From: Paragordius varius
Taxonomy: Eukaryota; Animalia; Nematomorpha
Reading direction: 5' to 3'
Assembly (NCBI GenBank): GCA_964247055.1
Contig: OZ176052.1
Location: 8,308,001 to 8,372,000 of the forward strand
DNA length: 64,000 nt
Shown here piece by piece: positions 761-62,891 of this stretch (positions within the stretch are counted from its first letter, which is position 1; the number at the start of each line of letters is the position of its first letter). A model generated the notes under the pieces. It did no database searches. It was not told where the DNA came from and worked only from the letters and a program-made list of their open reading frames with translations. The translations under genes and the position numbers were made by a program.

Positions 761-3323
761 TAAATCTTGCGCTACTTTTGTAACAACGCGTTAGGATCAT
801 ATTATTTGTAATTGTATATAATCCCCAGATAAATGTAAAAAATTAGCTTTGAAACACCAAAAAACGGGGGGGGGGGAGGGGGGGCTATTAGAAGGTTATT
901 TTTTATAAATCGTGATATTTTTTGGAATTAGCCCCTGTATTTAGTTCCCTCGTACGATAATGTTGCCAAAAACTACCTAAAATTATTTTAGCCAATTATA
1001 AACATCAAATACATTCATGGTCCAGCGGATGTCTTATAAAGGTAAGAATTATAACTAACCTACATTTTAATTAGATTTTGGGCAGAGCCGCGTTGGAGGA
1101 AAAAGCCTTTTGAAACAAAAATTCGATATAATATTTAGGGTGCATATAGTAAAATCAATTTAATCTTAGTAGTATGTTAATTATGAGAGGTACAAATATA
1201 CTGCTGTGATTAGCGCCAACCCGTGTATAAAGACAAAACCATCGATAGTCGCCAAAAATGAATAGTATTTTACATATTGGAGAAAGAGATTGAAAACACT
1301 ACGTTCCTTTTCAATCCAATTTTTTGGACCTTATTTCGTCACTAGAATAATCTATATCAAAAATATAAAGCTGGCTTTAAGATTACGGAAAACAGAGAGG
1401 CCCATTCAGATTCACAATTTATTTTGTTTATAAATTTAATACGCCGAACGCAGTTAAGCCATTTTTTTCAAGAACCAGCTGTAATTAGCCATTCTTACCG
1501 TAGAATCATATTTTCCAAAAAACTTAGTCTCCAAAAATATTTTTATCATTATTTGAAAAACATGTAAGTGATTTGATTTTCCGGAAAACGTATCGTATTT
1601 AAATTCAATCATAGGTCTTCCTTTTTCATGCACTGATTTTAGCAGAAGCATTATTTTAATTACGATTCTATATTTAGTCCCACCTTGTAAAGGCAAGTTT
1701 TGGGCAAAAAACCTCCATTCATCGTCATTCGCAAAATAATAAATTTCACATTTGCGGGAGAATGGCAATATTAGATATTACCAAATATGTCATATATCAT
1801 TATTGTCATCTATATTACATGCCAAATTTTGAGATAAAAATGACCTCCTCATAAGAGAAAATTACTTGCAGAATGCGAAAGCAAATGGGCGCTTGGTATT
1901 ACCAACTGATATTAAGCAGTGAGTCAATATAGCTAGAAAATATTCAATTTAATAGATGGTTAATAATAGTTTTGCATAATCAATAAGATAATATTACACA
2001 TTTAAAAAGTGAAATAATATAATGTGAAATTCTGATTTTTTGAAATAAAATTTAGGAAACTTTATAAAATTTTTATAAATTTGTTAAATATAATGAGTTG
2101 TCGGTTTTTTGCTTTTTATTTATGGCGTTTTGAAAATTATCATTTAGTTCTAAAAATGATGGATAAATCCCTTTATCCTAAATGTCCAAAACATAAAAGA
2201 GCCCTTGGAAAACTATATGATTAATGCGTTTTATATTGATTATAACGCCTAACGGAATAATTTATAAAAAGTTTAAAATATATTAATAGATCGCTCTGTA
2301 ACTCGACAAAATCATAACTAGTGGGAATTTATTCCTCATGATTTGTGAGAAATATAAATTAATTTTCACCACACATTATTTTATGAAATAGAAATTACAC
2401 ATCCCGTTGTACACGTTTAAAAAAAGATAAAATTTTGCTATATGTAAAGGAACAAAATTTGATTAAATATTTATTGCATTTTAATGATGTATAAATTTGT
2501 ACAATTTTATTAATATTTATGGTTAATAATTATTATTACCAGTTAAATCACAATACTGTAGATTGGTAATAGATTTATTTTGTTATTTATAAATTGTTAT
2601 ATCTATTATATATATATATATATATACAGTATGCATTATTTACCTGTGTTTTTTTAATTAGTAATAACAACTATACATTATAATACCAATATTAATTAAT
2701 ACAGGTATTTAGCATATTGAAAAATATATATTATTAAATTTAGGAATAATTAACATAAAACATCTTAAAATACGTATTTTACTATTTATTAATTTATCAA
2801 AGATAAAAACCCACAAAATTCCGCATCTAAATATGTAACAACAATATTACAAATGTTAACATAAATTGCTATAATATTCTCAAAATTTAACATTACAAAA
2901 TATCCATCAAATTAAAGCCTATGTTAATTCTCACGTCAATCCTCTTTCATATGTGTACTACGAAATAATTTCGTGGGTCAGTATTTTACGCATTGGATAA
3001 ACCATTTATGTTATTCGACTGACAATAAAATTACTGAACATACATTAAAATGCACACTGTATATATATATATAGAAAGAGCATTCGAAATAATATTATCA
3101 AATAAAAAAAATTAAATGCGTAGTATAAAACGCTAATGATCTTTATAATTTACTATTTGTTTGTGTTTTTGATCGGTTAGCGAAAATAATTAAATGCATA
3201 CATTTTGGAATAACGCATTATCATTAATATATAATATTGGCACAAAGCATCATAAGCTATTGTAAGAATTGGGAATAATGTATTTTCGATACTATATAAA
3301 TTAGATTATTCATAATATCTAAC

Positions 3324-3440
3324 TATGTATGTATGTATGTATGTATGTATGCATGTATGTATGTATGTATGTATGTATGTATGTATGTATGTATGTATAT
3401 ATGTATGTATGTATGTATGCATATATGTATGTATATATGT
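3324..3440. repeat. (TATG)n microsatellite
   Basis: About 29 direct TATG units with a few interruptions; explains the spurious ORFs at 3319-3547. Confidence 0.95.
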
Positions 3441-3770
3441 GTTTGCGCAAAGATCGTCGTTCATCATACAGTCGTTTGTCATGTAGAATTTTTAGAAATC
3501 TTTTTATTTTCTTTAATGTCATCGTGTTCAATATCGTAAGTAGCTGAATGTTAGGAGATTGGATAAATAATCTAAGTTTCTCCCTTTGTTAAGGTATGGG
3601 CCAATTTTCGCGTGCAATAATTTAGAACTTTTGATGAGTCTCGTTGTGTTATGCGTTAAATGTTTAGCAGGCTCAGAATGGACATGCGAGTCTTTTGATT
3701 TTTGGAGTAAAGCTTGTTTATTAGCACCTTTGTCTGTATTGTCATTCGTATTGGATTTGAGAGAAGGCAG

Positions 3771-6870: not shown

Positions 6871-9800
6871 AACATTTTAATCTTTGATCATTATTACCAT
6901 TTTTGCCTGAGTGTGAAAAACAAAATACAAATCGGGAGTCACCCCGAAAGATGGAAATGCAAACTAATTATCACAATCCCATATATCCACAATGTGTTTT
7001 TAGTTTACTTAAAAAATAAAGCATCCCACACTCTGAGCCTAAACCGTGTTCAAGTATGATAAATGGTTCACCCTTTATAGATGTGGCAATCTAAGAGGGA
7101 ATCGGCACTGCTAAGGAAAGCATGATGTGAATTTATGTCTGCACAACCTTTATGCGCCGACTATGGTGCCCAGACCGTATGAATTGATAGTTATCACTGC
7201 TTTCGGCCTCGCAATTCATTAGGTTTTACAATCAACTCTCATGCCTCTCGCATGGACACCAGGTTTTTCTACAAAGTTAACACCGTGCACCAATGTAATT
7301 ATAAAAAGAGCGCTTGACTTATTTTAATTCGGTCTCATATTTTTAAAAATGTGCCTGAAACTAACGTCATTCATGGTGGTACATTTTACAGAGTGTGCAG
7401 CCCTACCCAGCAGCTCTTTATAACAAGAACCTGACTATTTTTTTCCTTATATGAGTAATATCTAAAATTACTGATTTTATATGGTATCATTTTGCTTGAT
7501 CGAAAATGCCTCATAGTCACGTCATTTTTATACTGAAAAACATTTTACAGATGGTTGACATTGTGCAGGTACCTACCACTACTATTGATATAACACGATC
7601 TAATGAATTTTTTGAACGTGACTCTAAGCTAGTTTTTTTAACAAGGTGTAAGGATTGTACAAAATTTGATATCCTCCGACGATCGTTTTAAAACTTGTAT
7701 TTCAGCGGTGTATGCTCTTTACGGGGGATGGGGACAGAGACTAATATCAGAGTATCTATAATTATATAGGGTAATTGAATCCTATTACGGCTTTACATTT
7801 TCTGAATATTGCTTAGTCAGGATTTTTTATGTGGAAGCGTTTAATTTTCACAATAATCATCCATGGACTAATATAAAATGTCCGCTCGATTTTGACCTAG
7901 GTCTTTAATTAGAAATGACTAGATGTGGTAAAAAATGTTTTTACCGTTAAATTTAGGGGCTTGGTTTTGTACTCAAAAACTAATTTTACTGGGGAAGGCG
8001 AAGCTGAACTTAATGGCTAATAAAAAATTACGATGGAAAATTTTGATTGAATTTAAATGTGCCTAGTAGACTCCTAAAACATGCTTTAAAGAAACAGTTG
8101 TTGGGATCATAATAGTTTGAACTATTTACTGAGGGTCGTATGGCATAAAAAATGGCTCTGGCACTTAAAAAAATTTTCTCTTTTTAAATTTCGATGTGCC
8201 CTAACATTGTTAATATTTGGAAGATAAAATTCTTATAATAAAATATGGTGTAGAATCGGACCAAAATTTATTATTAAATTAATAATATGTAGGTGTAATT
8301 TTAGGATACCTATTCCAGTATATTAAAGTATTTTAACTTTATACGTTTTATTATTGAAAAAATTTACAACCGCTCTGCAATATATAATAAAATATATTTC
8401 AAGTCTTGGAACAAACTCCTATGTGAATTGTGTCATTTTGATTTTTATGTGTTCTCATTTTAACCACTTTTAACTCGTATGTGACAATTTTATATAACAC
8501 AGATTCAAAGACTATTTTGCCATATATTACATTGAATTGGTAAATACATCATATCACAATTTTTATAAATATTGATGCGTCTGTGAGGTACCTATTTTAG
8601 TCTCTAAACCATTTTTATCATTCGCGCATTTTTTATTTTTTTACGAAGATGAAAAATAATTAAAAAGTCAAATATTTACCGAAAAATGTGGTTGTACATG
8701 TTATCTATGTTTTTATATAAATAAAAATTGTACAGTCTTTAATTAAGATTAGTATTAAAATTAAATTTTTGGTATATCCTATGAAATTCTTTGCTTATAT
8801 GATAACCAATTTATTATATTTCTTTAAGTATCTTTTTATAATTTGAGTTACACACTGATCAAATTTAATAGCCAATGTTAGGTTCGAATTGATCATTTTA
8901 AACATCCAAACCAGGATTTGACCTTTAATGATATTGGTTAATCGTATAATATCTATTACAGTTTGAGCTTTTTTACTAAAGGATAAGGGCTTAAATTGCA
9001 TTAGTACTTAAATGCTTTAACTGACGCCTGCCCAGGGCTGACAGTGATGATGGATAAATTGCACAATTCAGGGATTCCATCTCTCTTATTCCAAACAGAG
9101 TAAGAGTTAGGCTCCCTACCTGCAATACCATCACGCTTATGATTGTCTATAAACAGAATTCAAAACATTTAAGTTTAAAATAAAATATGAGATAAATTAA
9201 AAAGTTAAACTTAACATATGCAGTAAAACACATATAAATTAGTGATATACACTGAACATAAGATAGAACTCTTAATCATATTTACTAAAAATACATATAA
9301 ATCGTTTTAAATCATATGAAACATAATTAGACTGTATCATAATAAATATTAAACACTGTTTACCAATCCAGATTATCGACTGAAATAACGGCAAATGCAA
9401 AAGCAGACATTTATCTGGCTTTCCCTTTCAAAAACGTCACCAAAGTCCTATATCAAAAATTAACTGCAACAGTTTTAGACACTGTCTCAAAGTTGTCGAT
9501 ATATTAATTTAATTTCATAAATGATAAACCCTAATAAAATATGACAATGTATGGTGTGCCGCACACAACAACAATTAAATCAAAACTAAAAGTTTACAAT
9601 TTATAAAATTTCCATTTCCGGACAGACCGAATTTTTCAATTTCACGCTAATCCTGCTGTAAATAAAGAATATTGGAGTGAATTACCAATACTTGATCATT
9701 TTCTTATCTTTTACGTAGAAGACCGTTTTCATTTATATTCAAAATTCGGTAAGCAAACCGGATTATTTTTGTCTTATTAGTCATGGGCTTAGAATGTTCA

Positions 9801-10377
9801 TTTTTCCAAACTAAAACTGGTAATATACGTATAAAAGGTGATTATTTAATATATAAAATAGATATATCTTTATGCGGTCAATATTAACCAAAATATTCGC
9901 TTTAGTAGATGGCTCATCGCAATGTCATAGGTCAGGGTTAATTTTAAAACATTACATTTTATATTTATATGTATAAAAGATGATATACATAAAATTAATT
10001 TCACACTGATTACAATTTTTGTACATCAAAATTTTAAGCTTATTAACATTCATATTTCAACGTTAAAGCATTTTCGTATTCATCGGTACATCTATAGTCA
10101 ATTTGCTGACAAACTTTCAATCAACTTTGAAAGATATGATAAATTGTATTATCGTTTTAAGATTCGATTAATATCAATGTTAATTTGGATATTTTTATTA
10201 ATAACTATATGCGCTTTTTCAATTATTAATATTTGATTTATAGCAAACAGTTATGAAGCGAGAGAATACAATAATACCAATGATATGTTTGACGCAATGC
10301 TAAATTAAACATTTAACTCACACATAACTGTTCGAATTACATTTCATTTTTAAACACAAACTAATTCGCCAAAAACA

Positions 10378-13300
10378 ATGATGCAAATTATTAAATCTTT
10401 ATTATTGGTTTTTTATCTTGGTCTCCTTTTTATCAAAGGATATATTGGTGGACATCCATCAATACAACCCACATTAGTAGCCCATAGCAATACCCAACCG
10501 CAAGAAATTCAGAACTCAAATTCCAAATATTTCAAACATATTCAAACATGTCAAGAACGTGGTGGAAAAATGGCGGGACCAGAATACTGTTGCCATCCGA
10601 CCGATGTCGTCTACCAAACAGACGAATATACCTGTTGTTCGACCTACTTAGATTGTGGTATGTTTTTATGAAAATCTTCCTTATTACAAAAAATTATTTT
10701 TTTAAAAAAAATTACCAAATTTTAAATCATTGTAAAGATAGAATTTATGCATCATCTTAATTCAATTTTATAGTTAAAAAAAGAATATTTTAATATTTAG
10801 ATTATAAATGTCGACAAATAAAGGGCGTATGCGTATCTCCTGAATGCTGTCATGGAAAAATAAGTAAAAACTTTATTGATCAATGTAAGTCAGTTTCCGG
10901 GACAGTTTGCTGCCTTAATAATGCATATTGTGGTAATTAAATAAAATTATAATAAAACAAGACCACAGCTTTATAAATCTATACTTTATAGGGAAGGATG
11001 TTTATTTATAATATGATAAGCTTCTGGAAAAACAACATATATCTTTTATAAGAATATAAAAATATGTTAGAAATAAATTTAAAACAAATAGTTTTGATAT
11101 TATAATGAAAAACATTATATTTATAGGCAAATCTTTGTTCTCAAACTTGTATGGTATCTACACCCAATTCGATAATTTGAACATCACTGATGTAGTCTTC
11201 ATGAAAAGTAATCAATCTATACAGTGTTTTTATGAATACCAATTTAAGAAACCATATTTTATTCTTAGGATTAAATGTTATGATATCAAGCTTTATAGTA
11301 ATTAAATATATTTCTTAAGATTTCCTTTGAGTTATATAGTTATTTTAGTTATGCCTTCAAGTGCTTGATTTTAATCAAATAAAATCCTTTTGTATATCAA
11401 ATATAAATATTATAGAGTGGCAAAAATATAAAAAATCAATCTTTGGGGATTATGCAACTATTAAACGTTTAAAGGACAAAATACAAGAGGCCGATAATCA
11501 AACCGGAGTTAATCCATATATTTTAGCAGCTCTAATGAGTAAAATGTCGCGTGTTGGAAAAGATTTGAAGAAAACATTTATGACTGGTGATCGTTGGGGC
11601 ATTATGCAGGTTTTATAAAACTTTTCACTTATCTAATCAACATTTATCCAATCACACTAACTTTTTTCATCCAAACTCATTTATAACGACTTTAAAAATT
11701 TAGAAATCACTTTTTAGGGTTTTTTATCTCTAGTTATAAATTGAATAAATGTTAAAGTTTTGGTTTGAAAAAGCGTTTTTAATAAAATTACCCAAGCATT
11801 TATTTAAAAAAAAATTTGGTATATAAAAAAAACTCTTGCTTTTTAAACGTTTAAAAAGCAATTAGTTAAAATTAATTTTGAATTTGATTAAGTGTAGAGT
11901 TTGGTTGAAAAAGTGTTGGTTGTAAAAGTTTTACAGATAAAATAAATGATTTTTCAAATATTAGGTTGATATAAACAAAAATATTCCCGTTGGATCACCG
12001 TTTAGCAGTTTACACATTAAACAAGCAGCTCAAATCATACGACACACCAGAGATCTTTTGTCTAAGAAACATCCGAAATGGATGCCGAACAAGTTACTTA
12101 AAGGTTAATTATTATGTAATTATTGTTTAATGTTTATCATATTCATAATTTATTTATATTCTATAATTTAAATACTTCATGAGAAGTTGATTGTTTCTGA
12201 TATTAACGGCTTTTTTATTTGTAACACGGGGGACACAAAAATATGTCATAGTATTTTTTTTATATAACCATAAAAAATGATAATTTCTTAAATGACTCAG
12301 AAAGTTTTAAAACTGTAAGCGCCAGAATCCTAAAACATTTTTCTACCAGAATATATATATATATATATATAATATATATATATATTTTGTCGTATACGAT
12401 TCCCGTTTTCAGCACTATGTTATAAATATATAGTAGCTTTTGACAAGCATCAAATTGAAGTTTAAAATAAAAGATTACCAACCATTTTTTATGTAAATGA
12501 AAATAAAAACTCTTTCAGCTATAGACAACATTTTTACAATTTTTTACACTCAAAGGCAACCAAATTTTAAAGCTGCTTTTAAAAGTTATCTTGTTCAACC
12601 TTAAATCTTTTGCATGAAAAACTAGTGCCTTTGGGTGAAAATATTATGTTATAAAATAAAAAAGCTCTTGAATAAAAATTTTGGATTTTACTGAAGATTT
12701 AATGAAAGGTGTAAAAAATATAAAAATTATTTTAAGCAACTATAGGTATGTACAAATTATGCAACATTTCCACCTATGATATGGCCAAAAATACCACGCT
12801 CGAATTGGCGACATTTGTGGATGATGTCATTCAAAGAGCCAAAATGTTTAAAAAACTCAAATTTTTGGACAGGGCTAAAACTTTCTACAATGATTTCATC
12901 CGGCCAAAACTATTTTTTTCTCAATTGAATGGCAGGGATTATTTTAATGAAACACATAGAACATATTCGTTTGATGATTATAATACAAATCGGGAATTAC
13001 ACCCAAGAAGCGAAATAACAATGATTGATTCTCATTCGAAACACAGTATTTATAATTTTTAAGAGCGATAATTAAGTCAATGATTGTGATACAGATATGC
13101 ATAGCTTAATCCTTTTATTTTATTATTTAGCCTTGATTCCAATTTATGAAACCCTGTTTTACTTGCCAACCAATGGTGCTACGAAAAAAACTATGCTTCG
13201 CTACAAGATTGACCCTAAATTATCAGGTTATATCTATATATAAAATATATCCATTAATTGTAAAGTTTCATTAAAATTGCATCAATGGCACAATAAATAT

Positions 13301-16300
13301 GCATAATAAATTAAATCACAATTTCAATCATTTCTTATTATAAATTAAAAATTATTTATTTATTAATGTTAAATGTTAAAAATATCTTTTTGTGTATTAA
13401 ATTTTTAGGAATTGAGGCATCGGAACAAATGATTAGCCAAGATTATTCACGTTTGCTTCAAATAACACCTACTATTAAAAGAGTATCTAAGGTTACTCAA
13501 ATACCGGTTGAACTTATTGCAGCTCTTATCAGTCAGCGTTCTAGAGTAGGTTCTACACTTAACGAATCCTTTTACGGTCACGCCGGGTTCGGACTGTATC
13601 AAGTATGGCTAATATATTATATAATTAACAACTTTAAATAAAATCTGGACTAGGGTAGATCACAAACTACAGAAACTAGTATATTTCCATATTAGATTGA
13701 AATTCTGTAGATTTCTATATTAATACTTGTCATGGGGTCTCCTAATAAACCCCGCACATTTTTTTTGTTCAAAGATTTGGTTAGGTTAAATTGGACAGAA
13801 TTAGCTATAGCTCCAAAATGTCAATGTAAAAAGTCAAATTGACATATGACTAGAACAAACTTCCTCATATCAATACCGGTTTGGACCGTTTGCTTTAACT
13901 ATCCTTGATTTATTTAGTAACCAACTAGTTTTAGTGGCCTAGCTCTGTCTCGATTGCTGGGCATTTTCTCTACATTTTTAGGATTTTGTTGTTATTTAAA
14001 TAAACAAAGATTATAATATACATACATTTTATTATAAAAAAATATATAATCATGTAGCTAGGATTCAAACCACAGCATTCAAACCTCTCACCATATTCCT
14101 ATTTCCATATACAAAACGGAGCAATAATTCTCCACAATTACATTGTAAAAGTAAAGTGGCATCACCCTAATTTTACCTTGCGGCAAATATTAATAGGTAT
14201 GCATTAGATTAAGGCATCATTATTTCAAGTGTTATTAACTTTTTTACTCCAATTTGGATTGATTTAGGTGCTTTAGCTGCATTCGAATCGCAAGAAAAAT
14301 CCATCCCATCCATCCCTAAAATAAGATATTTATACAGTTATGGGGATTTAATTATGGATGTTATTGCAAGAGCCAAATGGTTACGTAGATATGGATATCC
14401 CAACAATATTATTTCACCCCTTACTTTTGAACCGATGCTAACAACTACTTCTAGTAGTTTAAAAACTTCCAAAAGCGGTATAAAAATAATTGAATCTCTA
14501 ATAAATGTATCCAAAAGGGTCATTGATGAAATAACTAAATCTCAATCGGTACGGAATCAAACGTTTGTACAAACGGAAGATAAAGTTTCTCTAAATAGGA
14601 CAATCGGTGTTGAACAAAATAAAACGATTATGACGGTCACCAACAGTACTCCAATATCAATGGCAGTTTCCATAGGTGGATCAACCATCATAACGGAAAA
14701 TGGTGAAATGACCAAGTTAGTTAATATATTAAATTGTAATTTGTTTTTAAAATTGTATACACACAAATATCTTACACTTTTTTATAGGTCATCGGTAGAT
14801 GATGCAGTAGATAATAGCATAGCAACTTCTACAAATTCAATAATTGTTCACACGGATATGACTAATACATCAGATGACAATATAAAATCAATTAATTTCT
14901 CCAATGTCACACAAACTAAAAAAAACGATTTCACAAATATAGTTACCACACAGTCTAGTATAACTGATGTTATATCAAGAATTTCCTCCGAAATCGGTCC
15001 GGATTTATTAACGGAATCAAACACGGCTCAAACTGTTTTGGTTGCTACAACTATATCTTCAATCTCTGAAGCAAGCAATCAAAACAATGAAAACATGATG
15101 GCAATAAATGAGGCAATGACAACGGTGTCGCCTTCTATTGGCTTTGTAGAAATAGGAAGTAGCACAGTTGAAATGGTAAAAGAAACTGGGGTTGATTTTA
15201 TCACCTCTGTTGATTTGATTCCAACCTTTCCTGCATCAATAACTGTATCTGAAAACAGTCGAACAACAAGCGAATCCCCCTTTATTTCATTTAATGAAAA
15301 TAACGATGGCAATGTCAATATTATGCCAACGTTTCCCTCAGTTCTTACTATTAATGATTTTGCTGGGGAATCAGAAGGAATAGCTTCCAGTTCTACATCA
15401 GAACAAACCATTGTGATGACCACTCAACAATTAATTGTCGAAAATAATATTTTTAATGATTTGGATGTGTTTCTTAGATACCTACAAAATACTTCCAATT
15501 TCATTGTCTTCAACCTAATTACTGAATTACCGACCGGTATAGTTAGATATAACGAAACCGTATTTAGATATACGACATCGTTTAATGAAACATTTACTAT
15601 AATAAATATTACATCTGTTCTCCAACAATTGCTAAACCGGATATTTGAAATATTTAAGATAGGATTGGGAGTTAATTTTGGCAATTATAGGATAAAAATT
15701 ATTTTTGAAAAGTCAAACGCAGCAAATATTCGTTTTAATTATATTGATTTGGTAAACTTAACTATTTTTCGCCAAAATTTTGCTGATAACTTTCCTTTGT
15801 TAACCATTGTTGCATCGAATCAAACTCTTAACCTATCCAAAAAGGATGATTCTGATCAAAATCTTTTAATAATATTCCCTTCAGCTTTGACCGGTATTGA
15901 AGTGTCGGATGAGTTTGGAGCAATCATAACAAAGTTTACAATATCTACATCGAACACAACAACGCTTTTTCAAGAGTTGACCAACTTTTTAACTCGTTTA
16001 ACGTTTTACAATATTTTGACAAGCTCTTCCTCAAATGATGTTAGATTAAATCAAAGTGAAATAGCAATGGATTTTGGAACAGTGCAAATCAATATTAATT
16101 CCAATATGTCTGGATTACCGAGTGGCAATGCGTTTGCCAGTTTGGATGATATAATAATGTACCTTAATAAGAATCTTAGAGTTTCGAATATAACATCAAA
16201 AAATATTTTTTCCAATAATACGGTTATAAATTTATTTTCAAACGTTACAACATATCGTATCTTAAATTTCCTCAAAGACCCTACCAATGTAGAGGGTATC

Positions 16301-18580
16301 AACTCTCTTAATGATACCGTTACCTCGTATATGATCAATGGTACAACCTATTACATTGTCAATGTTACGTTAGGGTTAGAAAATTTACTAGAAAATTTAC
16401 AGGAATATTTACGGGTTACTCTTAACATTCCTAAGGATTCATCTTTTACCATACGTTTCTTATTTGATTCTAATGATGTTAATTTACTAACCACCAATTT
16501 AAATGCTATTGATTTTCGTGTTTTTTCAACTAATTTGTTGAAAACGTTTCCTTTACTACAATTTATTTTAAAAAATGAAATAATGGATTTTCGTAGCGGA
16601 CTTATTGAAAACAATCAATCTCAATACGGTTTATTTATTCTACCAACATATATAAAAGGTATTGAAGTTCGAGATATAAATGATTCTGTTTTAACACAAT
16701 TCATGTTTCCTAGTGGTGCTAATAATTTATATACTCTTCAACAATGGATTAATTTAATAGCCAATATATCGAATGATGTAAGCTCTAATACAATACCAAT
16801 GAATTTCGGACAAAATGCAACGGTCAACATCGAGATAAATGAAAATTTAATTCGTTCTACGTCCCTACCCACAATAACTGATAATGAAATTGGGACTCAA
16901 GTGGAAACATCCACAAATGAGCTAAAAGTCTTAGATTCTACGTTAATAGGAAGTTTTGCGTTTGGTCAAAACTTACCCTATCTCGTTGAGAATGAAAATC
17001 TTATCATTCAAAAATTTAACGCTACCTTTTATTCACTTAGGGCCATCGAGCAAACTGATGTTATTTATGCACAAGATATTACAGCATTTTTTAATTCACT
17101 TGTACAAATATTGTATAGGGCATTGAATCAGGTGCAAACGGTATCCAGATATGCCGTAAAAGTTTCGCTTATATTTGATATCCAACCGGGCACTTCCAAT
17201 TCTAATGATAAATATTACATTCTGCGGTTAAATTCTGTGGACGCTGGCTTCATAAATTCTTCAATATACCATGAGTTTTCCAACGAATCTTTAGTACAAT
17301 TAGGTTTTTCAATTGAAATAAAAGTGCACTTAAATGATGAAGTAGAAAAAGAAGATTTGTTTAAAATATATCTCCTAAAAAATTTATTAATAAAGAGTAT
17401 AAGAATCCAATTTTCATCGGGAGAAATTTTAAACGTTTCAATTGATAACAATTTATCGGACCTTGACTTTATTATTAATAGATTGAGAATGAATCTTTCT
17501 CAAACGTTTGCTATTAATCAAGAAATTACGAACATAAATGCAACAATTATTAACAATAATATCCTTGATAAAGAAATAGTGATAAGTACTTCAAATACGC
17601 CCATAAAAAATTCAACCATTTTAACAATGGGCAATGGTAATAATACGTTTGTTAGTGAAATAAATACAACTCACATAATGTATATCAATTTATCAGGTAA
17701 CAAAATTGATATTATACCTAATTTAACCAAACGACTTACAAACACGCTATTAGATTTCCAAAAAAAGTTGAAAATTGAATATAATGTTTCCCAAACCTTA
17801 ATTGAAGATTTAAATTACGAATTCATTATAAAGATAACCGGAAACACAGATGATACCCTAATTATTGATCTAGATTCGTTAGGGGTGGTGATTGATAACT
17901 TAAATAACTTGAAATTTGATGTAGAGGGTAATGTTAAAGCTATGGGAGATTTTGGTATCGCGTCCAGATTAAATACGTCAAATTCTAACGTGATCGTAAT
18001 TGAAAACGCTGTTATAGAATCCGTCAAAGTTTTTGAGACAGATACCACAGGATCACGGATCATTATTGGAACTTTAGCTATTAATGAGTACAATAACAAC
18101 AAGTCAAGTAATATTGATGTTATTTTTGATGAAAATTGGATTAATATAAAAAAAGCTAATGAGGAATTTTCTATCACAAGTGAAAAAACTACTCTTGTAA
18201 TGAAAAATCTGATGACCGTTTCCACCATTTTTCCTTCATATAATACCACCCGATATTCAATCTACATAAATCGAACCCATAATGAGAACAGATCAAGAAA
18301 TAATTTGTCTTTTCCAATCTCGTACAACAGAAATAAAAATAAACCATTTTATCATTATTTGGATCGAAACGGGGATGATTACAACACCCGAATGTACAGT
18401 GCAAGCAGAAATGATTATCGCAATGGAACAAGCAGCCGAGTGTATGGCAATACATACATATCCCGCAATTATGGACCAGTTGTTATGTATATCAATATCA
18501 GAAAAAACCCATTGTACAAACCATCTAACCTTATTCGACAGCTCAAAGTTGCTAAGCGACCATTAAAATTGGGTATGTAG
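10378..18580 (+). CDS. Large secreted multidomain protein: 2 beta-defensin-like Cys modules, 2 catalytically degenerate goose-type (GH23) lysozyme domains, S/T-rich stalk, ~4 diverged ~210-255 aa repeats, Y/R/N-rich tail (~1948 aa as modelled)
   Basis: Phase-consistent exons 10378-10657, 10801-10932, 11127-11191 (junction uncertain), 11349-11609, 11965-12103, 12746-13045, 13131-13226, 13409-13602, 14058-14196, 14268-14715, 14788-18580 (5847 nt). Signal peptide MMQIIKSLLLVFYLGLLFIKG. g-lysozyme motifs: NPYILAALMSKMSRVG..WGIMQ|VD..DDVIQRAKMFK and TNGATKKT..GIEASE..IAALISQRSRVG..GFGLYQ|..GALAAF..DVIARAKWLRRYGY. Confidence 0.85.
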
Positions 18581-19811
18581 CAAAATAAATATTTCTATTA
18601 ATGTAAAAAATATGATATATCAAATCTTGTCGATTGATATATTACAATTGCTAATGCTATGTTTATTTCTTTCAGTTTGTCAGTAAGATTGTATATCAGC
18701 GTATATGTTTCCAGATTGCATTTCTTAATTAAATTGCCTTAAATAGGCATTTATTTTTGATTTTTGCGTTTTTTTAAATTATGAAGCAAAACTTTAACTT
18801 TTAAATAGTTAAACAAAATATAGATATGATTAGTTTCGAAAATTTATTCGTGACGTGTCTTCCTTTTTATGTATTTAATATACTGGTAGTTTTATCGATA
18901 TTTTGGATATATGCGCATTAGTACCCTTTTAATTTAAAGGGTAGGTACGTAAATGAATCCTTTAGATTGATGATTTTTGCAATACATTAGTCTCTATAAG
19001 GCAAATTTATACTTAAATTCAAATAATTATTAAAAACGGTTATGGACATAATACTATGAATTATACCATAGAATACTAGAGCTCCATTGTCTTAAAGCTA
19101 TCTCTCAGTAAGGGCAATTTATTTCTTTGTTCTAATTTTAAGTTAGTTCAGTTACGTTTACAATTATATTCATTCTTTATTAATATAAACATCCTATAGA
19201 TGGGGAACTTGTGCAATAAACAAGATTGGAATTAATTCCATATAGATTCAATTCTAATTTTATAGTTAAGTTTTAAGAGATAGGGCCCAATTAAAAAAGA
19301 GTCATCCATATATTTATAATATTAATTATATATTCCCTAAGGATATAAAGAAGTTAAAGTTTTTACTAAATCCCCAAACCTAATGGGCTTAATTTTTAAA
19401 ATATGGTAAACTTTTCTGGTTCTAACTTTGACTTTACTTATTTTTGAATATGAACAGTAATAATCGAAATTATACAGACAAAACTTAAAAACTCAGGCAT
19501 ATATTTTTGAAAAAAAAAGATAACCATTTTTTCAAAGATTGATTTTTGTGAAATAAAACTCATCGTTTTGCATTGCAAATAAAATTTAGATGTAAATTCA
19601 CACTCAATCATATATTTGAAAATTGTAATTACATAGTTTATGTAGGAAAAATTAAGGTTTAAAAAAGTATGCATATTTTTTGTCTTATAGTGAGTTTTTA
19701 CGTTTTGTCTGTTTAATTATAATTTTTGCTGTACTGTAATAATAAAAAATATAGCAAAATCTTTTTTAATTAATACTCATACATACACAATATGTTATGT
19801 GTATCAAATAG

Positions 19812-19999
19812 ATCGAGTTACTAGAAATATGAATAAAACAGCGGCTGATTTAACCAAAGTAGATTTGTTCGAGCTCGATACATCGATAAATGGAAAGCAT
19901 GGAATGTTCCCCCTAAGTGGTTTGAATGGGCCCTACTTTAACCCCCAATCTTTTTACAATAAATATGATAACACTCATCAAAATTATTCGGTATCTTAA
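19812..19999 (+). CDS. Probable additional 3' exon of the lysozyme-like gene
   Basis: The TAG at 18578 lies inside a strong donor (TTG G|GTATGT, 18573, phase 1). The acceptor CAAATAG|AT at 19811 joins in frame to give DRVTRNMNKTAADLTKVDLFELDTSINGKHGMFPLSGLNGPYFNPQSFYNKYDNTHQNYS, which has the same N/Y/F/K bias as the preceding tail. Confidence 0.55.
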
Positions 20000-21006
20000 G
20001 ATATATAAAGAAACACGCATTTCACCCATACAACATATTTTTATATTTATATTAATGCATTTATTTCACGTTTTAATGCAGGGAAAACATGCCTTTAATA
20101 TTAACTCTTATAATTATTATAATAATAAATAGTATTGCGACTTTTTACTAATTTATCATATATTGTCATAACAATACTATGTACAACTCTTCGTTATGCG
20201 ACCTATTCCTGTATTAACTTACATTGACTACAAAGTTTTAACCTGTTATACATTATAAACAACGAACCCATTTTCAATATTAAAATATATTTAATATAAA
20301 AAAATACATTAAATCACTCACTATTTGTGTAAAATACGGTAACCGCCCAAAGATATTTACAAAAAGTGTTTAGATTAAGCAATATTAATTATTTGGGGTA
20401 CAGAAAAATGTAAAATAATGTATTAAAAAGAATTCGTATACAAAAAATTTAACCAATTTTTCCCATTCTAATATTAAATTTGTTTATTAACTTTGGACAA
20501 AATCTATTTTTATATCCTACGATACTGCATTACCAATTAACCAACATAAATATGCATATTGTGATTAGTTCATGCATATCAAAAACTATTTCGATTTCTA
20601 AACAACGAATCTTTTGGAATCGTTAAAAACTGACCGTATTCTCCCACAAATCAGTTCATAAAATGTGGCTTAATTAGAATAAGTTTCAACGATTATACAA
20701 TTTAACTGAAATTGAAATTATCACTCCATTGATGCGCATAAACAGCATCAGCAAGAAATAATGCACACAAAAAGAAGGGTGAGTTTCATGAATAACCCTT
20801 TACAGTTCCTTTAATCCTTTGAGCTTATCAAGGAAAGCGTGTAACATAACTATCATATACTCAATTTTACAAATAAGCATAGGTATAAAACAATATATAA
20901 TATATATTTTTTAAAAAAATTCCAAAATTTGCTCTTATCGTTATCTAAAAAGATCAAATATCTGTATTTATTAAGCACAATAATATACCACAATCACTCT
21001 CTGTAA

Positions 21007-23734: not shown

Positions 23735-24394
23735 ATGATTTTTCACACCCATTTACCGTTTTCGATTGCATTTCTTTTCATTTCACATTATTGTTACGTT
23801 TGCCATTCAGCTCCACAAAAATTTAATTCACTCATATCACAAAGGAGGGCTCTTGGGAGACACGTTAGAATCCCAAATTATGATCGTTTCTTTGATAGAG
23901 AAGGTCAGGGCCCACACCAAACCAACAAACAACAATCTCAGCATTTGACTAAACATCCGTGGAACCTTTACAAAGCATATAAGGATTTTCAATACACCCA
24001 GCCTGATGTTAGTAATAAAAATGGTCCTCAAACCTTTTACGATACCACTTTAGGGGATGAACAAATAGGTAATTATGATGAATACGGGACCGGTAGTAAC
24101 AAGCAATTCATACCAAACAGAAATTTGAATGAAGATTTGATTCTATGGCTCCTGCAAAAAGAGTTACCCAACAGATATGACAATAATAACTATTATTACC
24201 CTAAAAAATCGGTCATAGCCAATGATCGACAACCAACAAGTTATGTCAGAGCCCTAGAAAGTAATCGAGATTATTTGGAGAAAAAAGATGAACCCGATGA
24301 AGACCTAGAAACGCCCATCAGAGTGTCCGCTATATATTTTGTTCCGCCTGGGAAAGCTACTTCTCGCCTGGGTCAAGAATTAACAAACAACTAA
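23735..24394 (+). CDS. Secreted protein of unknown function, prohormone-like (219 aa, single ORF)
   Basis: Clean 660-nt ORF with coding-like composition, a hydrophobic N-terminus ending in CHS|A, basic sites RR, KK, KK and GK, and no Cys after the signal peptide. No family recognised. Confidence 0.7.
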   Translation: MIFHTHLPFSIAFLFISHYCYVCHSAPQKFNSLISQRRALGRHVRIPNYDRFFDREGQGPHQTNKQQSQHLTKHPWNLYKAYKDFQYTQPDVSNKNGPQTFYDTTLGDEQIGNYDEYGTGSNKQFIPNRNLNEDLILWLLQKELPNRYDNNNYYYPKKSVIANDRQPTSYVRALESNRDYLEKKDEPDEDLETPIRVSAIYFVPPGKATSRLGQELTNN

Positions 24395-33359: not shown

Positions 33360-33790
33360 TCAAAATTTTAAAGTTGGTTGCAAAACCGCAACAGTTGTTT
33401 TAGCGAGATAAACAAAATTTATTAGTATATTCTTCATATTTTTTATTTGGCATAATGCATTTTTTTGAAGATATACACAACGTCTACATAAAAATATCCT
33501 GATAAAAAATATATTTTGATAGAAAAATTTACCAGGATTATCATGGTTTTTTGGTTTTGGCACTTAGGAGTGATTTTAGAAAATTATTTGCCCTTTTAAG
33601 GTAGGTGCTCTATATAATTTTAAAATTTGCACACCTTTGGTTATATGATATTCTTAAATGGATGCTATTTTTTTTAATTCAAAAGAATCACAAAAATATT
33701 TTATCAATTACCTACTAAAAGCAAACAATATTTTTTAAAATTAAATTTTTTCTGTGGGCTCTGAAAGTCCCAATATTTTTGCTCTTTTAA

Positions 33791-34372
33791 CACTTGGATA
33801 CAACACATTCATTTTAGTCCTTCGATTCAAATTGGGGTAGTTGGATACCCCAGGCCTGTTTAAAATCAAATACTTCAAAAAGTATGGAAGCAATCGAAAC
33901 CATGGCAAAATTTTGCACTTATATAACATTAATAAACCGAAATATATCAAAAAATTTATTCAAAAATACTTGATATTACTTATTTTGAGCTAAAACTGAA
34001 AGGTAAAAATTTAGTCAACGTGACATGTGTCAAATTGTAAAATTAAAAAATAATACAAAATAAACCGCTTTTTCTATTTCTATCAATTTTAGATGTAATT
34101 TGTATAAAAAATAAGCTTTAGTTTTACCCTAAAAATTAAATTAAGACGATATTTTGCAAAATTTTTGTAAAATAAAAATGGCGTCGAAGTAGTTTGAGAT
34201 GGAACTTTTTTTTCAAAACAAAATTTTATCAAGATATTTTGGCATATTTATATAATATTTATCAGGATAGAAGCATAAATTTAAATTGGGACCGTTTCCT
34301 TCAGTAGTTTTTTAAAAATTTTAATTTAAATTTAGTCTGGGGTATTTAGATACCCCAATTTGAATCGAAGTG
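33791..34372 (+). mobile_element. piggyBac-type MITE, ~580 bp (copy A)
   Basis: TTAA|CACTTGGATAC...GAATCGAAGTG|TTAA; asymmetric subterminal inverted repeat TTCGATTCAAATTGGGGTA..ATACCCCAG. Confidence 0.85.
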
Positions 34373-34889
34373 TTAAAGCTACTTTTCTCAAAATCGAAAA
34401 TGTTATATATGTGAATTTTAATATCAACTAAAATATTTCTAAAAAATGCAACTTTTTTTAAAAAATTAAGTTTTTAGCATTTCGTTGAGGCGCACATAAT
34501 ACTATTTAATGAAAACTGTCTAAAACGCTTAAGATGTAAAAATTTATCTACATGTTTAAATAATGCTGAACTATATCTCGTTTGAATCTAATTTTAAAGG
34601 CTTTTTGATTATTTTTCTGAGTTTTCGTAGAAGAAACAATTTATTTTTAATATATAAAACATTTTTATACCGTTTTCTTCTTGCCACAAAACAATAGGAA
34701 GTTTGTTCAACAAAATTTTTCTAAAAATTAAATTAATAAAGCAAGTATGTGGATATTCATAATATGTTTTGTGATTCCATAATACTGAAAATTATGTTAT
34801 AATTTCGGCATTTTTGCGAAAATAACCCATTACACAGGGAAACAAATCGGGGTCATGAAAAAATATCTCGATGAAATTAGTACATTCTA

Positions 34890-36570
34890 ATAAAAAAATG
34901 CAGGATTTTCATGGTGCTTTTGATTTTGTTACGAGTGATATAATAAAGTAATTTATACTTTTGTAATAAATGCGCCATCTAAAATAAAAATTGACTACTT
35001 TTTTGCAATATATTTTTGATGAAAGCTAAATGCTTCATTCCAAAAAATATATCATAAACTTTTACTAAAAGCAAAAGATTTTCTTATAATATTTTAATTT
35101 TTAAATGTGGACGAAAGTCCCAAACCTTTTTGATCTTTTAAAACGGGCTTGTTATTTTAACACTTGGATACAACACATTCATTTTAGTCCTTCAATTCAA
35201 ATTGGGGTTGTTAAATACCCCAGGCCTGAAAATTAAATTTTTTAAAAAATATGGAAGGAATCAAAACCTTGGCACAACTTTGCACTTATATAACATTAAT
35301 AAACCGAAATATATAAAAATTTTTATTCAAAACTACTTGATATTACTTATTTTGAGCTAAAACTAAAAGGTAGAAATTTAGTCAACGTGACATGTGTCAA
35401 ATTGTAAAATTAAAAAATAATACAAAATAAATCGCTTTTTCTATTTCTATCAATGTTAGATGTAATTTATATAAAAAATAAGCTTTAGTTTTACCCTTAA
35501 AATTAAATGAAGACGATACTTTGCAAAAATTTTGTAAAATAAAAATGGCGTCGAAGTAGTTTGAGATGGAGCTTTTTTTGCAAAACAAAATTTTATCAAG
35601 ATATTTTGGCATATTTATATAATATTTATCAGGATAGAAGCATAAATTTAAATAAGACCGTTTCCTTCAGTAGTTTTTTAAAAATTTTAATTTAAATTTA
35701 GTTTGGGGTATTTAGATACCCCAATTTGAATGGATATGTTAAAATAAAGGCAAAAATGCCGGTCCGCAATAAAATTTTTAAATATTCAAATTTGAATAAA
35801 AAAAAAAGTCTTTAAAATTGCACACATTTTACGAAAATTTAATTCGGAATTTTCGTGAAGCGTAGTTCATCCTTTTTTAAGGCATGATTAAAGCGATATA
35901 AAAACTCTTATTATATTAAAAAACGCTTTTCTAAATAAGTGGATGGGGCTAAACATTTCTATCGCTTTAGTATTTTAATTTTAATGTTCGCTTTGGTGAA
36001 TTTTTATTTAACACAATTTATATTTGACATAAATTTGAAGACAAACGAATTAATCAAATAAAATTCTCAGGTGATAGTAATGTTCAGCATCATCAAATTA
36101 ATTAGAAATAGCGTTTTTTAATATCTAAAAGCGTATATGGTTTTTATGCCTAAAAAAGGATGAAGCGCGCTTCAATAAAATATCGCTTAAATTTTATTTT
36201 CGTAAGTATGGATTTTAAAAAATATTTTTTTATGTCAAAATTTAGCATATATGTAAAAAATTTATCGCGCCATCTCGGCATTTAATGCGTTTGTTTTCAA
36301 AGAACTAGCCCGTTGTAAAAGAGCCAAAAAACTTGGGACTTTCGGAGCCCACATTTAAATATTATAAAAATATTAATTTTTAACTAGTTTATGATATAGG
36401 ATATTTTCTAGAATGAAGCATTGATCAAAAAATTTTATTACAAAATATGTGCTCAAATTTTGCCATTTTCTGATATGGAGCACTTACCAAAGAAGTGTAA
36501 ATAATTTTCTTATATCACTCGTAGGCCCCGAAGCCAAAAGCACCATGGAATTCTGGATACATTTTCCTAT
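34890..36570. mobile_element. Foldback element with ~270 bp inverted arms, interrupted by piggyBac MITE copy B
   Basis: CATGGTGCTTTTG..TACGAGTGATATAA..GAAAGTCCCAA..AACGGGCT (34890-35155) is mirrored at 36300-36570; related fragments at ~33500-33790 and ~36650-36850. Confidence 0.6.
35161..35738 (+). mobile_element. piggyBac-type MITE (copy B)
   Basis: TTAA flanks; near-identical to copy A. Confidence 0.85.
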
Positions 36571-38141: not shown

Positions 38142-38839
38142 TATATATGTATATAATATATATATGTATATATATTTTATCAGGATTTTATACCCCCCGA
38201 TTTTGCACGCACTGTTAGTTTTGCGAAAAAATGATTCATATTTTTCATAAATATTTGCTAATTGCTGATTTTTTACATAACTTTGGGAACATATGTAGGA
38301 AAACTAAACTTTTTAAACCAAACTAAAAATCAAATAAAAAACAGTGTGATATGTTTATCCCTTCAATTATTTTTCTTACTAATAATGTGAAATAAAACGA
38401 ACTATTTTTATCTTTGGTTCCAATGCCAATTCCAATGGTTTATACCGGTTCCACAGTCTTAGGATGGTTCTAATATTGTTTTCATTTTAAAAGATAGGTT
38501 CAAGAATAAAACGTTTGCGGTTCGGCCTTTTTTAAATGGAAAAACAATTGTTTTTGACTAAATGATTCCTAAAATTATTTTTAGAATAATTTTTGGTACA
38601 GGTTCAAAAAAGAGGGACGCGTTTTCAAATTGGTTTAAAATAAATTCCGGCGTAAATAGGTTAGGTTTCAATCCTGTTGTGATATTAAGACTCCAAGTCC
38701 ATAGTTCTATCTATCATTATTATCATAAAGCTGGAGCCCAAGTCTATGAATTATATTGACGAAGCCTTTCACACATCACTTTGTAATTGCAGTTTATGTT
38801 TAATCTCAATTCGTCAGTTTTATTATTCCTTTTATTTAA

Positions 38840-39381
38840 TACTTCGATTTAAATTGGGGTATCTAAATACCCCAGACTAAGAGTTGATTTTTTAAAAAAT
38901 ACTAAAACAATCGGCCACAATTTAAATTTATGCTTCTATCCTAATAAAAATTATAAAAATAACCTGAAATATATAATAAAAATTTAGTTTTGAAAAAAAG
39001 TTCCATATCAAACTATTTCGAAGCCTTTTTTGCAAAATATTGTGTTTATTTAATTTTAAAGCTAAAATTAAAGCTAAATTTTTATTTAAACTAACATTGA
39101 TAGAAACAAGAAAGTTGTGTTTTTTGTATTATTTTAATATTTAGCTAATGTACACATGTCATGTTGACTAAATTTTTACCTTTGGGTTTTGCCTGAATAT
39201 ATAGAATATCAAGTAATTTTGAATGATTTTTTTATATTTTGGTTCATTAATGTATAAGTGCAAACTTTTGCCATGGTTTTAATTCATTCCTTTATTTTTG
39301 AATTAATTTAATTTTTAAGCGGCCTGGGTATCCAACAACCTTTGAATCGAGGGACTAAAATGAATGTGTTGTATCTAAGTG
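38840..39381 (-). mobile_element. piggyBac-type MITE (copy C)
   Basis: Reverse-orientation copy with TTAA flanks; more diverged. Confidence 0.8.
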
Positions 39382-39496
39382 TTAAGCTTACTTTCAGGAC
39401 AACATCAGTTAAATTTTAAGTTACAACCTTTCACGGATATAATATTGTTTTAAAAAATATCCTTGTATGCAAATGTAGATGAACAACAATTAAAAA

Positions 39497-41521
39497 CAGT
39501 GGTACTCACCAAAATAAATTTGACGGGCCGAATAAAATATATGTTTTTTTCGAGGGCCATGAACCTTATAATGGCAAATATTCCAAAGCTATTTGACACA
39601 TATGATATTTATACTCTAAATCAGCACAGTGAATTTTTTTGCAATTCGCATGTAAAGCCAGCTAAATACTTGTTTTGCACCATTTAGTTTAAAAAATAAA
39701 AATATTTTGAACCAATAATTTTTGAGAAATTTGGTTTCGCCTCATGACAAGCCAATCTTAATACGTCGTCCATATGATCATCGGTTAAGTGATTTTTGTA
39801 TGTATTCTTGGCATACTTTATTTTTAAATATGCCGTCTCACACGTGTAATTTGAGGAAACAGTTAGGATAACTTGAGCACATTTTTGTATATTTTCATAT
39901 TTATTTGGCACATCTTGCAAAAACTCTACATATTTTTCTTCTCTGCGATTCTCCTTGAAAATAGCGTCCAAAATGGAATTTCATAAATCTAAGAATTCTT
40001 CACGATATGCGTCTGATCAAAACCGAAATGCTCAAATTGCTTAATAACGAGTTTTAAAATATTTCTTAATTCTTAAAATCTGAATTTCATCTCATTAGAT
40101 AAAAATGTTAAATGTCAATTATTAAATTAATCTCCGCGGTAAATTCCATATTTTTCATGAATCGTTATAGGTTTTGGAAAATATAGGAGGGCTTTATTTG
40201 TAAAATCTTGTTTATATATTATTAATTTTTCTTCAAAAGCAAATATTTGATTAGCAAATTGGGTTCTTATTTTCCCTTGATTTGTATTAAAAATACTAAG
40301 TCTAGGTAGGCTAATACACCATTTACTATTAATTTCCTCGTCAATTTCTGTTATCTTTTATAAAAAGAATTTTATATCTTAAAACAAAAAATCTATATTT
40401 GAACATATTATCAAATGCGTAGAGCACATGTTGAATCTGAAATTTTTAATTTGCCTAATTTATGAGAATGGTGGATTCTAAAATGTCTCAATATTGTTTT
40501 TTTTATAATTATCTTGTCCTTACATATAAGGCAGGTAACGACATTATTTAAAATGCCAAAGAATTTTTCTGCCCATTCTTTTTAACGTTTTTTAGCATTA
40601 GATGTCATCCCTTGAATTTATATTATGTTAATTTTTTCAAAAAATAGGAATATAATTTAAATTATGCTATAAAAAACCAATCAAATTTAATGATGGTGAT
40701 TTAAAAAATATTTTATGGGGAACACTTCGATTCAATTTGAGGTATCTAAATACCCCAGACTAAATTTGAGTTAGGATTTTAAAACTACTGAAAGAAACGG
40801 TCCCAATTTAAATTTATGCTTCTATCCTAATAAAAATTATATAAATATGCCAAAATATATAAATAAAATTTTGTTTTGAAAAAAAAGCTCCATATCAAAC
40901 TACTTCACCGCGATTTTTGTTTTACAAAATTTTTACAATATCGTCTCTATTTAATTTTAAGGGTAGAATTAAAACTAATTTTTTATTTAAATTACATCTA
41001 ACATTGATAGAAATAGAAAAAGCGGTTTATTTTGTATTATTTTTAATTTTACCATCGCACACATGTCACGTTAACCAAATTTTTACCTTTCGGTTTTAGC
41101 TTAAAATAAGCAATATCAGTATTTTTGAATAAAACTTTTTCTATATTTCGGTTTATTATTGTCATATAAGTGCAAAATTCCCATGGTTTCAATTCTTTCC
41201 ATTTGTTTATAGAATTTAATTTTAAACAGGCCTGAGGTATTTAACTACCCCAATTTGAATCGAAGGACTAAAATGAATGTGTTGTATCCAAGTGTTAATG
41301 TGGGGATTTTTTTCTACATTTCAAATTGGGTAAAAAATAAAAATTACCAAAATAAAATTTTTAAAAATTAAATTAATATAAAAATCAGTGAAAATTCGTT
41401 TATGTGTATTTTAAAAATTCATCGATAAAAAAATAATTTCAGTATCAATAAGGTCATGGGGCAATTTTAAGGCACTCTTAGCGCCGCATGCGGCCCGCGG
41501 GTCGCGGTTTGAGTACCACTT
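39497..41521 (-). mobile_element. Decayed hAT transposon (Charlie/SPIN/Buster-like) with a nested piggyBac MITE
   Basis: TIRs CAGTGGTACTC / GAGTACCACTT; 8-bp TSD ATTAAAAA / CTTAAAAA (7/8). ORF 39684-39971 is a hAT C-terminal dimerisation domain (YENIQKCAQVIL..SSNYTCETAYLKIKYAKNTYKNHLTDDHMDDVLRLA). Confidence 0.85.
40723..41294 (-). mobile_element. piggyBac-type MITE (copy D), inside the hAT element
   Basis: Full-length copy; TTAA is intact only on the right. Confidence 0.8.
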
Positions 41522-42183
41522 CTTAAAAATGTCGAGACCGATATTTTAAAATATCAAAATATACTTTAACTTAAGATACACTTTATCAAAACTTTGCCAA
41601 ATTAATAATAATAATAATTATTATTTTATGTTCAAGCGCAGGGGTGTCCATCACACGGCCCGCGGACTACATGCGGTCTATAAAATATTATATTTTAAAA
41701 TACAAAATTCCATAATTTGCAGAAATATTGCTATTCAAAAACTAAATTTTATTAATTTTATATTTATATTCCAATTACTAATATAGTTTTTGATAATAGT
41801 TATCTCAAAGTTTTTTGGAGGTATTTCTTGGATTTTTAAATGGCTATATACATTAATGAAAATGTATTTATGGCTAAAAATGTAAATACTTAAATTTAAA
41901 AAGATTTTATTTTATTGAAAAATTTGATAAATTCTGATTTAATATCGTCCGTTTGTGTCAGTCGTTTCTGTAAACCCCAATTTTGGGCTTTAAAATTCGG
42001 TGAAAAACATAAGCTTTTTTGTAGATGACAAAATTTGATTAAGCCTTAACTAGAATAGCTTTTAAAACAGTATCTTAACAAGAATCTTAAGATTTTTAAA
42101 AAGGAAAGATTTTATAGATAATGAAGTTTTATTCAGTTTTATATCAGATGGTGTGTTCTTTGCGAAATGGGTTGAATTAAACT

Positions 42184-56693: not shown

Positions 56694-56699
56694 TTAAAA

Positions 56700-58153: not shown

Positions 58154-58469
58154 TTAATATATTTGTCAGTTGGTTACCAATGAAAAAAATCGGCACAAAT
58201 GCATGATGCACCTAAAAGAGTGAAAATATTTTAATTTTCTGGGCACAAAACATAATTAGGTCTGATAATTTTATTTGAAATTTTTCTTAACAGCCTCAAT
58301 AAGAAACGAATTTGGAATTTTCTATATTATATTACCGCCTCAATCCCTCTCTACAACCCTTTCACAATAAATTAAATTATTCAGCTGTTGCTACAGTTTC
58401 CGTTCTCCAGGGCCTACAGCTTAGTAAAAAATTTGTTCTAAAATTTTGTTCTAGAAGTGTAGTTTTTAA

Positions 58470-62891
<4,422 letters not shown>

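Follow-up and report, generated by a model that had tools for sequence, protein, structure and literature searches.

Can a lysozyme fold outlast its catalytic residues as part of a much larger animal protein, and what would it then be used for? The question is raised by a plus-strand gene in a 64,000-nucleotide stretch of the genome of the nematomorph Paragordius varius (assembly GCA_964247055.1, contig OZ176052.1, positions 8,308,001 to 8,372,000 of the forward strand), which we call the window and whose internal positions serve as coordinates throughout. The gene occupies 10378-18580, or 10378-19999 when a probable last exon is included. From its N-terminus, the predicted protein would consist of two small disulfide-rich modules, two folds of glycoside hydrolase family 23 (GH23) with a linker of ~60 residues between them, a Ser/Thr-rich spacer, a region of ~925 residues and a basic tail. 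We propose, with about even confidence, that it is an extracellular glycoprotein of no enzymatic function, whose lysozyme folds would act as binding modules on a long glycosylated body. All searches and structure predictions described below were run on each exon piece separately.

Two tandem domains derived from g-type lysozymes

Single exons from the lysozyme-like part of the gene matched only goose-type (g-type) lysozymes in the PDB: exon 6 (13409-13602, 194 nt) at E = 1.8e-5, with salmon g-lysozyme, exon 3 (11416-11609, 194 nt) at E = 0.083, exon 4 (11965-12103, 139 nt) at E = 0.22 and the start of exon 8 (14268-14400) at E = 0.34. These matches are colinear, covering lysozyme residues ~24-97, 97-142 and 137 to the end. 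Domain 1 has its N-terminal part in exon 3, which aligns with goose lysozyme residues ~36-96, its middle in exon 4 (~97-142), which starts with Val-Asp, and its C-terminal part in the first ~39 residues of exon 5 (12746-13045), the linker making up the rest of that exon. Domain 2 is laid out in the same way, with its N-terminal part in exon 6, its middle in exon 7 (14058-14196, 139 nt) and its C-terminal part at the start of exon 8, where the match extends over the last 45 residues of g-lysozymes to their C-terminal Gly-Tyr. A two-sequence profile built from exons 3 and 6 found all six g-lysozyme sequence groups at E values of 1.1e-7 to 3.3e-5, the next match being at 0.64, and a profile of exons 4 and 7 found three g-lysozyme groups at 0.003-0.004, over positions 111-141. 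The pseudo-lysozyme of g-type descent that the initial annotation had recognised here is thus borne out, as two tandem domains.

The two domains are 27-30% identical and can be aligned in a common register without gaps. Each spans three exons, the first two of which are equal in length between the domains (194/194 and 139/139 nt), and the phases are equal as well. From the equal exon lengths and phases and the gapless alignment we conclude that the pair arose when a cassette of three exons (194 nt, 139 nt and the third exon), with phase 1 at entry and at exit, was duplicated in frame. The same symmetric phase 1-1 arrangement is found in exon 2, and the donor of exon 8 is likewise in phase 1.

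Loss of catalytic residues in both domains

The signature motifs of GH23 and of the family 1 lytic transglycosylases are ES, GLMQ and AYNxG, the last two belonging to the substrate groove. In the P. varius domains GLMQ is retained, as GIMQ and GLYQ, while ES has been lost and AYNxG has decayed to MYKLC (domain 1) and AAFES (domain 2). HMMER alignments place a Met at the position of Glu73 in domain 1 and an Arg in domain 2. Opposite Asp86, domain 1 has a gap and domain 2 a Gly; Asp97 is retained in domain 1, through the Val-Asp at the start of exon 4, and is a Leu in domain 2. In g-lysozyme, Glu73 has been described as the general acid essential for catalysis (Kawamura 2006, as cited in PMC4243810), and its replacement in both domains therefore excludes muramidase activity by the known g-lysozyme mechanism, so that the product could not cleave peptidoglycan in this manner. 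One might suppose that glycosidase or transglycosylase activity persists by way of another acidic residue, domain 1 having kept Asp97 and having an Asp near the Asp86 position; this seems to us extremely improbable, since the residue exchanged for Met or Arg is an essential one and domain 2 is without all three acidic positions.

The surroundings of the former catalytic site appear to have been less free to change. When exons 3 and 6 are compared, 9 of the 17 identities fall within 14 residues around the lost Glu (AAL.S..SRVG..L), suggesting that this region is still constrained.

Gene structure

Our model of the gene starts with exon 1 (10378-10657), which contains the ATG, a signal-peptide-like segment of the first ~21 residues, a spacer and a first Cys-rich module with 6 Cys, and which ends at a phase 1 donor (GTG/gtatgt); an in-frame stop lies upstream at 10351-10353. 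Exon 2 (10801-10932) encodes a second Cys-rich module with 8 Cys. The acceptor of exon 3 was chosen because it gives a length and phase matching those of exon 6, and because the preceding sequence, 11349-11415, has an intron-like G+C content (GC) of 0.21. Exon 5 ends at a phase 1 donor (ACA/gtattt), and unspliced readthrough at this point would reach a stop five codons later, at 13060. Exon 8 (14268-18572) is 4.3 kb long, and its donor (TGG/gtatgt) lies six bases ahead of a TAG at 18578-18580. Exon 9 (19812-19999), the probable last exon, consists of 62 codons and a TAA in a phase that fits the donor at 18572. With exon 9 the predicted coding length is 1,956 codons, and with readthrough from exon 8 into the TAG it is 1,896.

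All junctions of the model are GT-AG with compatible phases, and the junction codons, none of them a stop, specify D, E, G, R, G and D. The boundaries also coincide with sharp steps in composition, exons having a GC of 0.31-0.40 and introns of 0.15-0.29 in a window where GC ranges from 24 to 37% and where the DNA of this locus stands at ~27%; at exon 6, for instance, GC is 0.10 in the 60 nt upstream versus 0.37 inside. Exon 8 holds an open block of 1,455 stop-free codons, and at 27% GC, with ~8.5% of codons expected to be stops, chance is therefore impossible as its origin. A codon-usage log-odds score, for which only codons 1 to 1,315 of exon 8 served as the training set, favors the predicted frame in exons 3, 4, 5, 6 and 9 and in the tail of exon 8, and in the linker part of exon 5 it is positive in the predicted frame only. 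The same score picks the right frame in the unrelated exons of an ELAV-like gene and a carboxypeptidase gene in the window, and it is uninformative for the Cys-rich exons 1 and 2 and for exon 7.

In view of these features we regard it as very improbable that the locus is non-functional, be it a duplicate that is not expressed or is decaying and has so far kept an open frame, or an artefact of the many GT and AG dinucleotides on offer in AT-rich DNA. Open blocks of 55-100 codons are indeed frequent by chance in the window, and no homologue or paralogue of the gene came up in our searches. Neither circumstance would account for an open frame of 4.3 kb, colinear homology across six exons, GC that changes sharply at each boundary, codon bias specific to the predicted frame and an enrichment of glycosylation sequons (see below).

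The initial annotation had described 11 exons joining into one open reading frame of ~2,000 codons. The long multi-exon frame with consistent phases stands, and the number of exons that we can support is eight or nine. Within intron 8 (18573-19811) no island rises to the GC of an exon, and of the candidate exons with phase 1 entry none that reaches 45 nt is exon-like in GC. Exon 9 itself has a GC of 0.35 against 0.22 upstream, and its codon score of 0.167 exceeds the 95th but not the 99th percentile of null open blocks; we consider its attachment to the gene probable, with somewhat better than even confidence. A search for RNA families in 9000-21000 found none.

One gene or several

That a single gene encodes all of these parts is likely. 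Exon 3 is without a start codon and must therefore be spliced to upstream exons, and exon 6 starts at the homologous position and equals exon 3 in phase and length. Neither a signal sequence nor a start belongs to domain 2 itself, and only the donor of exon 5 is compatible in phase with exon 6. One exon, exon 8, carries both the last part of domain 2 and the entire orphan region.

A division into two or more genes would place exons 1 to 5, with the stop at 13060, in a gene for a small secreted Cys-rich pseudo-lysozyme, and the second pseudo-lysozyme together with the C-terminal region in another gene starting from ~13366, with exon 9 perhaps belonging to yet another. Such a division can draw on the closeness of stops to two donors, five codons past that of exon 5 and six bases past that of exon 8, and on an in-frame ATG at 13366. 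This ATG is the sole one upstream of exon 6, however, and the segment that it would add (13366-13408) has an intron-like GC of 0.14 and would make a poor signal peptide. A second gene of this kind would also have to explain why exon 6 equals in start, phase and length an exon that cannot be a first exon, and why it is not preceded by copies of exons 1 and 2, of which we found none ahead of domain 2. We therefore judge a division of the locus to be improbable, and take the single gene as the basis for what follows.

N-terminus and Cys-rich modules

A hydropathy scan of every exon piece (KD19, 19-residue window) peaked at 2.11 for residues 1-19, all other positions staying at or below 1.23. The N-terminus is thus the sole segment of transmembrane-like hydrophobicity, from which we predict a secreted protein with neither a transmembrane helix nor a glycosylphosphatidylinositol-type end. 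The call of a signal peptide rests on hydropathy, and on this measure it agrees with the initial annotation, which had also seen no evident transmembrane helix. The product of this one gene of an AT-rich animal genome would accordingly enter the secretory pathway by way of its N-terminus and remain free of a membrane anchor.

The Cys-rich modules of exons 1 and 2 are related to each other, with six common Cys in the order C..CC..CC..C. Their relation to proteins outside this gene is less clear. For exon 1 the best PDB match is gallinacin-11 at E = 1.1, which is not significant; exon 2 has no match in PDB or Pfam, and in the ESM Atlas only a sub-threshold one (0.75) to an unnamed cluster. An AlphaFold2 (AF2) model of exon 2, made with the exon 1 module, reached a predicted local distance difference test (pLDDT) score of 56.5, too poor to be used in a fold search. 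The Cys of exon 2 do allow the reading C-x6-C-x4-C-x12-C-x7-CC in the manner of beta-defensins and big defensins, to which the gallinacin-11 match of exon 1 would also lead, but the six common Cys do not follow the C-C-C-C-CC order of beta-defensins and exon 2 has eight Cys in all. Given this difference, the lone insignificant match and the absence of a Pfam match, we do not retain the earlier description of these modules as defensin-like.

An orphan C-terminal body

About 70% of the protein, or ~1,400 residues, belongs to an orphan part encoded by exon 8. It opens with a Ser/Thr-rich stretch (14435-15439) in which Ser and Thr make up 29% of residues and Pro 2.4%, and in which tandem repeats are absent at the DNA level, self-comparison being empty there as well. 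The stretch may be O-glycosylated. Together with the signal peptide, such a long and (as predicted) probably glycosylated Ser/Thr-rich segment recalls the secreted gel-forming and tethered mucins. Mucins differ in their repeats and in their VWD, CK and SEA domains, none of which is present here, and the Ser/Thr and Pro contents of the stretch are low by comparison; a typical mucin domain would look different, and the label of mucin given to it before is not supported.

The stretch is followed by a pair of homologous units, ~235 and ~255 residues long (15440-16909), which are 31% identical and align with a Smith-Waterman z score of 13, and then by a further ~435 residues (16910-18214) of similar composition, which can be divided into units 3 and 4 by eye only. 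A four-fold repeat was suggested by a MAFFT alignment and was rejected, as shuffled Smith-Waterman comparisons and hhalign support units 1 and 2 only, with units 3 and 4 showing no significant similarity to either. Of the novel repeat that had been proposed for this region, one significant pair consequently remains. An AF2 model of unit 1, with unit 2 supplied as its alignment, had a pLDDT of 42.6, again too poor for a fold search. The unit region contains 35 N-x-S/T sequons, compared with 21 +/- 3.9 expected from composition, and is probably N-glycosylated. Exon 8 ends with a basic tail (18215-18572) rich in Tyr (12%), Arg (12%) and Asn (15%), in which 21 Lys and Arg stand against 5 Asp and Glu. 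Taken as a whole, the ~925 residues between the Ser/Thr-rich stretch and the tail would form a sequon-rich, alpha/beta orphan region with at least one duplicated unit of ~240 residues.

Relatives of the C-terminal region were sought at several levels. The C-terminal 1,055 residues gave 0 matches at E <= 0.001 in a HMMER search of 1.84 billion representative proteins, among which the species, and perhaps the phylum, seems to be thinly represented. A word-based search with the 1,434-residue exon 8 piece returned nothing, the exon 6 block shared no words with any entry, and the ESM Atlas held no usable match for units 1 and 2. No exon piece matched Pfam, whether a collagen, cuticlin, chitin-binding or other matrix domain. 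Within the genome, where searches covered the 110.6-Mb assembly of 44 contigs, no paralogues were found for exons 2, 6, 8 and 9, the search with exon 8 being a first-look one in six frames. These 1,055 residues could thus be a fast-evolving, lineage-specific invention or a member of a domain family that has not yet been sampled.

Possible role of the protein

In the role that we favor, the lysozyme folds would bind glycans of the peptidoglycan or chitin type, or else a protein partner. Glycan binding by lysozyme heads that have lost their catalysis is a plausible prediction. The stretch around the former active site is the best conserved part of two domains that have otherwise diverged widely.

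Several observations weigh against this proposal. Because just one of the three GH23 motifs survives, the roles first suggested for the protein, namely putative binding to bacterial walls and microbe trapping in a cuticle, egg coat or mucus, are somewhat weakened, and with AYNxG degenerate in both of them the capacity to bind glycans may have been lost along with catalysis. The assignment of the domains is itself uneven along their length, exons 5 and 7 having no PDB match on their own and no single exon matching Pfam SLT (PF01464) at E <= 1 in an exon-by-exon search, which is a weaker test than one with a whole domain; SLT was not found anywhere in the genome in six frames either. The splice junctions that join the parts are all predicted from genomic DNA, and the low-confidence AF2 models (42.6 and 56.5) give no fold for the units or the Cys-rich modules.

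The degeneration of two motifs in both domains could also mean that the lysozyme folds are relics, carried without glycan binding in a secreted protein whose work is done elsewhere. The protein would then be a structural matrix or adhesive component, for instance of a cuticle, an egg envelope or a gel, and would act through the orphan region and the Tyr/Arg-rich tail, possibly by cross-linking. The sheer share of the orphan part in the protein and the composition of the tail are in keeping with this idea, which we consider possible but rather unlikely. Relics would not be expected to keep their best conservation around the former catalytic site, nor to retain GLMQ in recognisable form, and the Pfam searches detected no matrix domain.

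Returning to the lysozyme folds as binding modules, a more far-reaching version would see the gene as a lineage-specific invention, in which two g-lysozyme folds were turned into glycan-recognition heads on a new family of glycosylated ~240-residue units. Pattern-recognition or matrix proteins would thereby gain a new type; we put this forward as a doubtful suggestion.

Comparison with known g-type lysozymes and other non-catalytic enzyme folds

Enzyme folds that have lost a catalytic residue and been reused for binding or for another role include the chitinase-like lectins, non-catalytic peptidoglycan recognition proteins, the sperm lysozyme-like protein SPACA3 and alpha-lactalbumin. These belong to different folds and families from the protein described here, for which binding is only proposed. 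Multi-domain g-lysozyme genes may have been described in urochordates; in the literature that we searched, no description of tandem or multidomain g-lysozyme proteins was found. The architecture, which the initial annotation had not recognised, likewise had no counterpart in our searches.

With the goose-type lysozymes of GH23 (goose 153L, salmon 3MGW and cod 3GXK), the P. varius domains have in common a colinear core of ~150 residues, a GLMQ-type motif, an ending of the form ...ARA..[YF]....GY and a secreted state, which is predicted here. They depart from them in the replacement of Glu73, in the degenerate AYNxG and in being two tandem domains within ~1,900 residues, as opposed to a single-domain enzyme of ~185 residues. 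Vertebrate lysozyme g genes have one structure of five coding exons with conserved positions (PMC4243810). Across animal lineages the g-type family is patchily distributed (PMC11576321); among ecdysozoans, the literature that we covered names it only for one deep-sea shrimp (PMC8707215), and PMC11576321 mentions no ecdysozoan.

The closest precedents are human LYG1 and two genes of the sponge Corticium candelabrum, in which catalytic residues have been lost from single-domain g-lysozymes (PMC11576321). Like the P. varius domains, these paralogues belong to the g-type family, have lost the catalytic Glu or Asp and are presumed to have a non-lytic role. Unlike them, the dead domains described here occur as a duplicated pair in a protein that also contains Cys-rich modules and the orphan body, whereas the paralogues are of ordinary size. 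Catalytic loss is therefore the known part of our observation, and its occurrence within a large new architecture with an orphan body the new one. If our reading is true, it would add another enzyme fold to those recycled as binding or structural modules and would extend the known distribution of the g-type family; until the gene's expression and the protein's binding have been demonstrated, the practical value stays modest.

Other features of the window

Downstream of the gene, an intact open reading frame of 219 codons (23735-24394, plus strand) has a hydrophobic N-terminus, frame-specific codon bias and no Pfam match, and may encode a small secreted orphan protein. An M14 zinc carboxypeptidase gene follows at 42181-47880 (plus strand), with a Peptidase_M14 match of E = 1.6e-21 on the exon at 42418-42675. 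The ELAV-like gene at 58470-62888 (plus strand) has RRM exons and a long hinge that is rich in His, Gln, Ala and Pro and much higher in GC (0.35), and it includes a possible intron of 23 nt at 58702-58724. This gene and the carboxypeptidase gene are both of animal type.

A dispersed repeat family of ~0.5-0.6 kb is spread over 33785-59913, with at least eight copies that are 76-98% identical, lie on both strands and are mostly in introns of the neighbouring genes or in intergenic DNA. Examples are found at 33785-34376, 35152-35742, 38835-39385, 40721-41298, 44401-45014, 56108-56842, 57858-58172 and 59393-59913, and no copy lies inside 10.3-20 kb. Near the start of the window, at 3300-3590, a long microsatellite of the (TATG/CATA) type gives rise to open frames in several phases on both strands.

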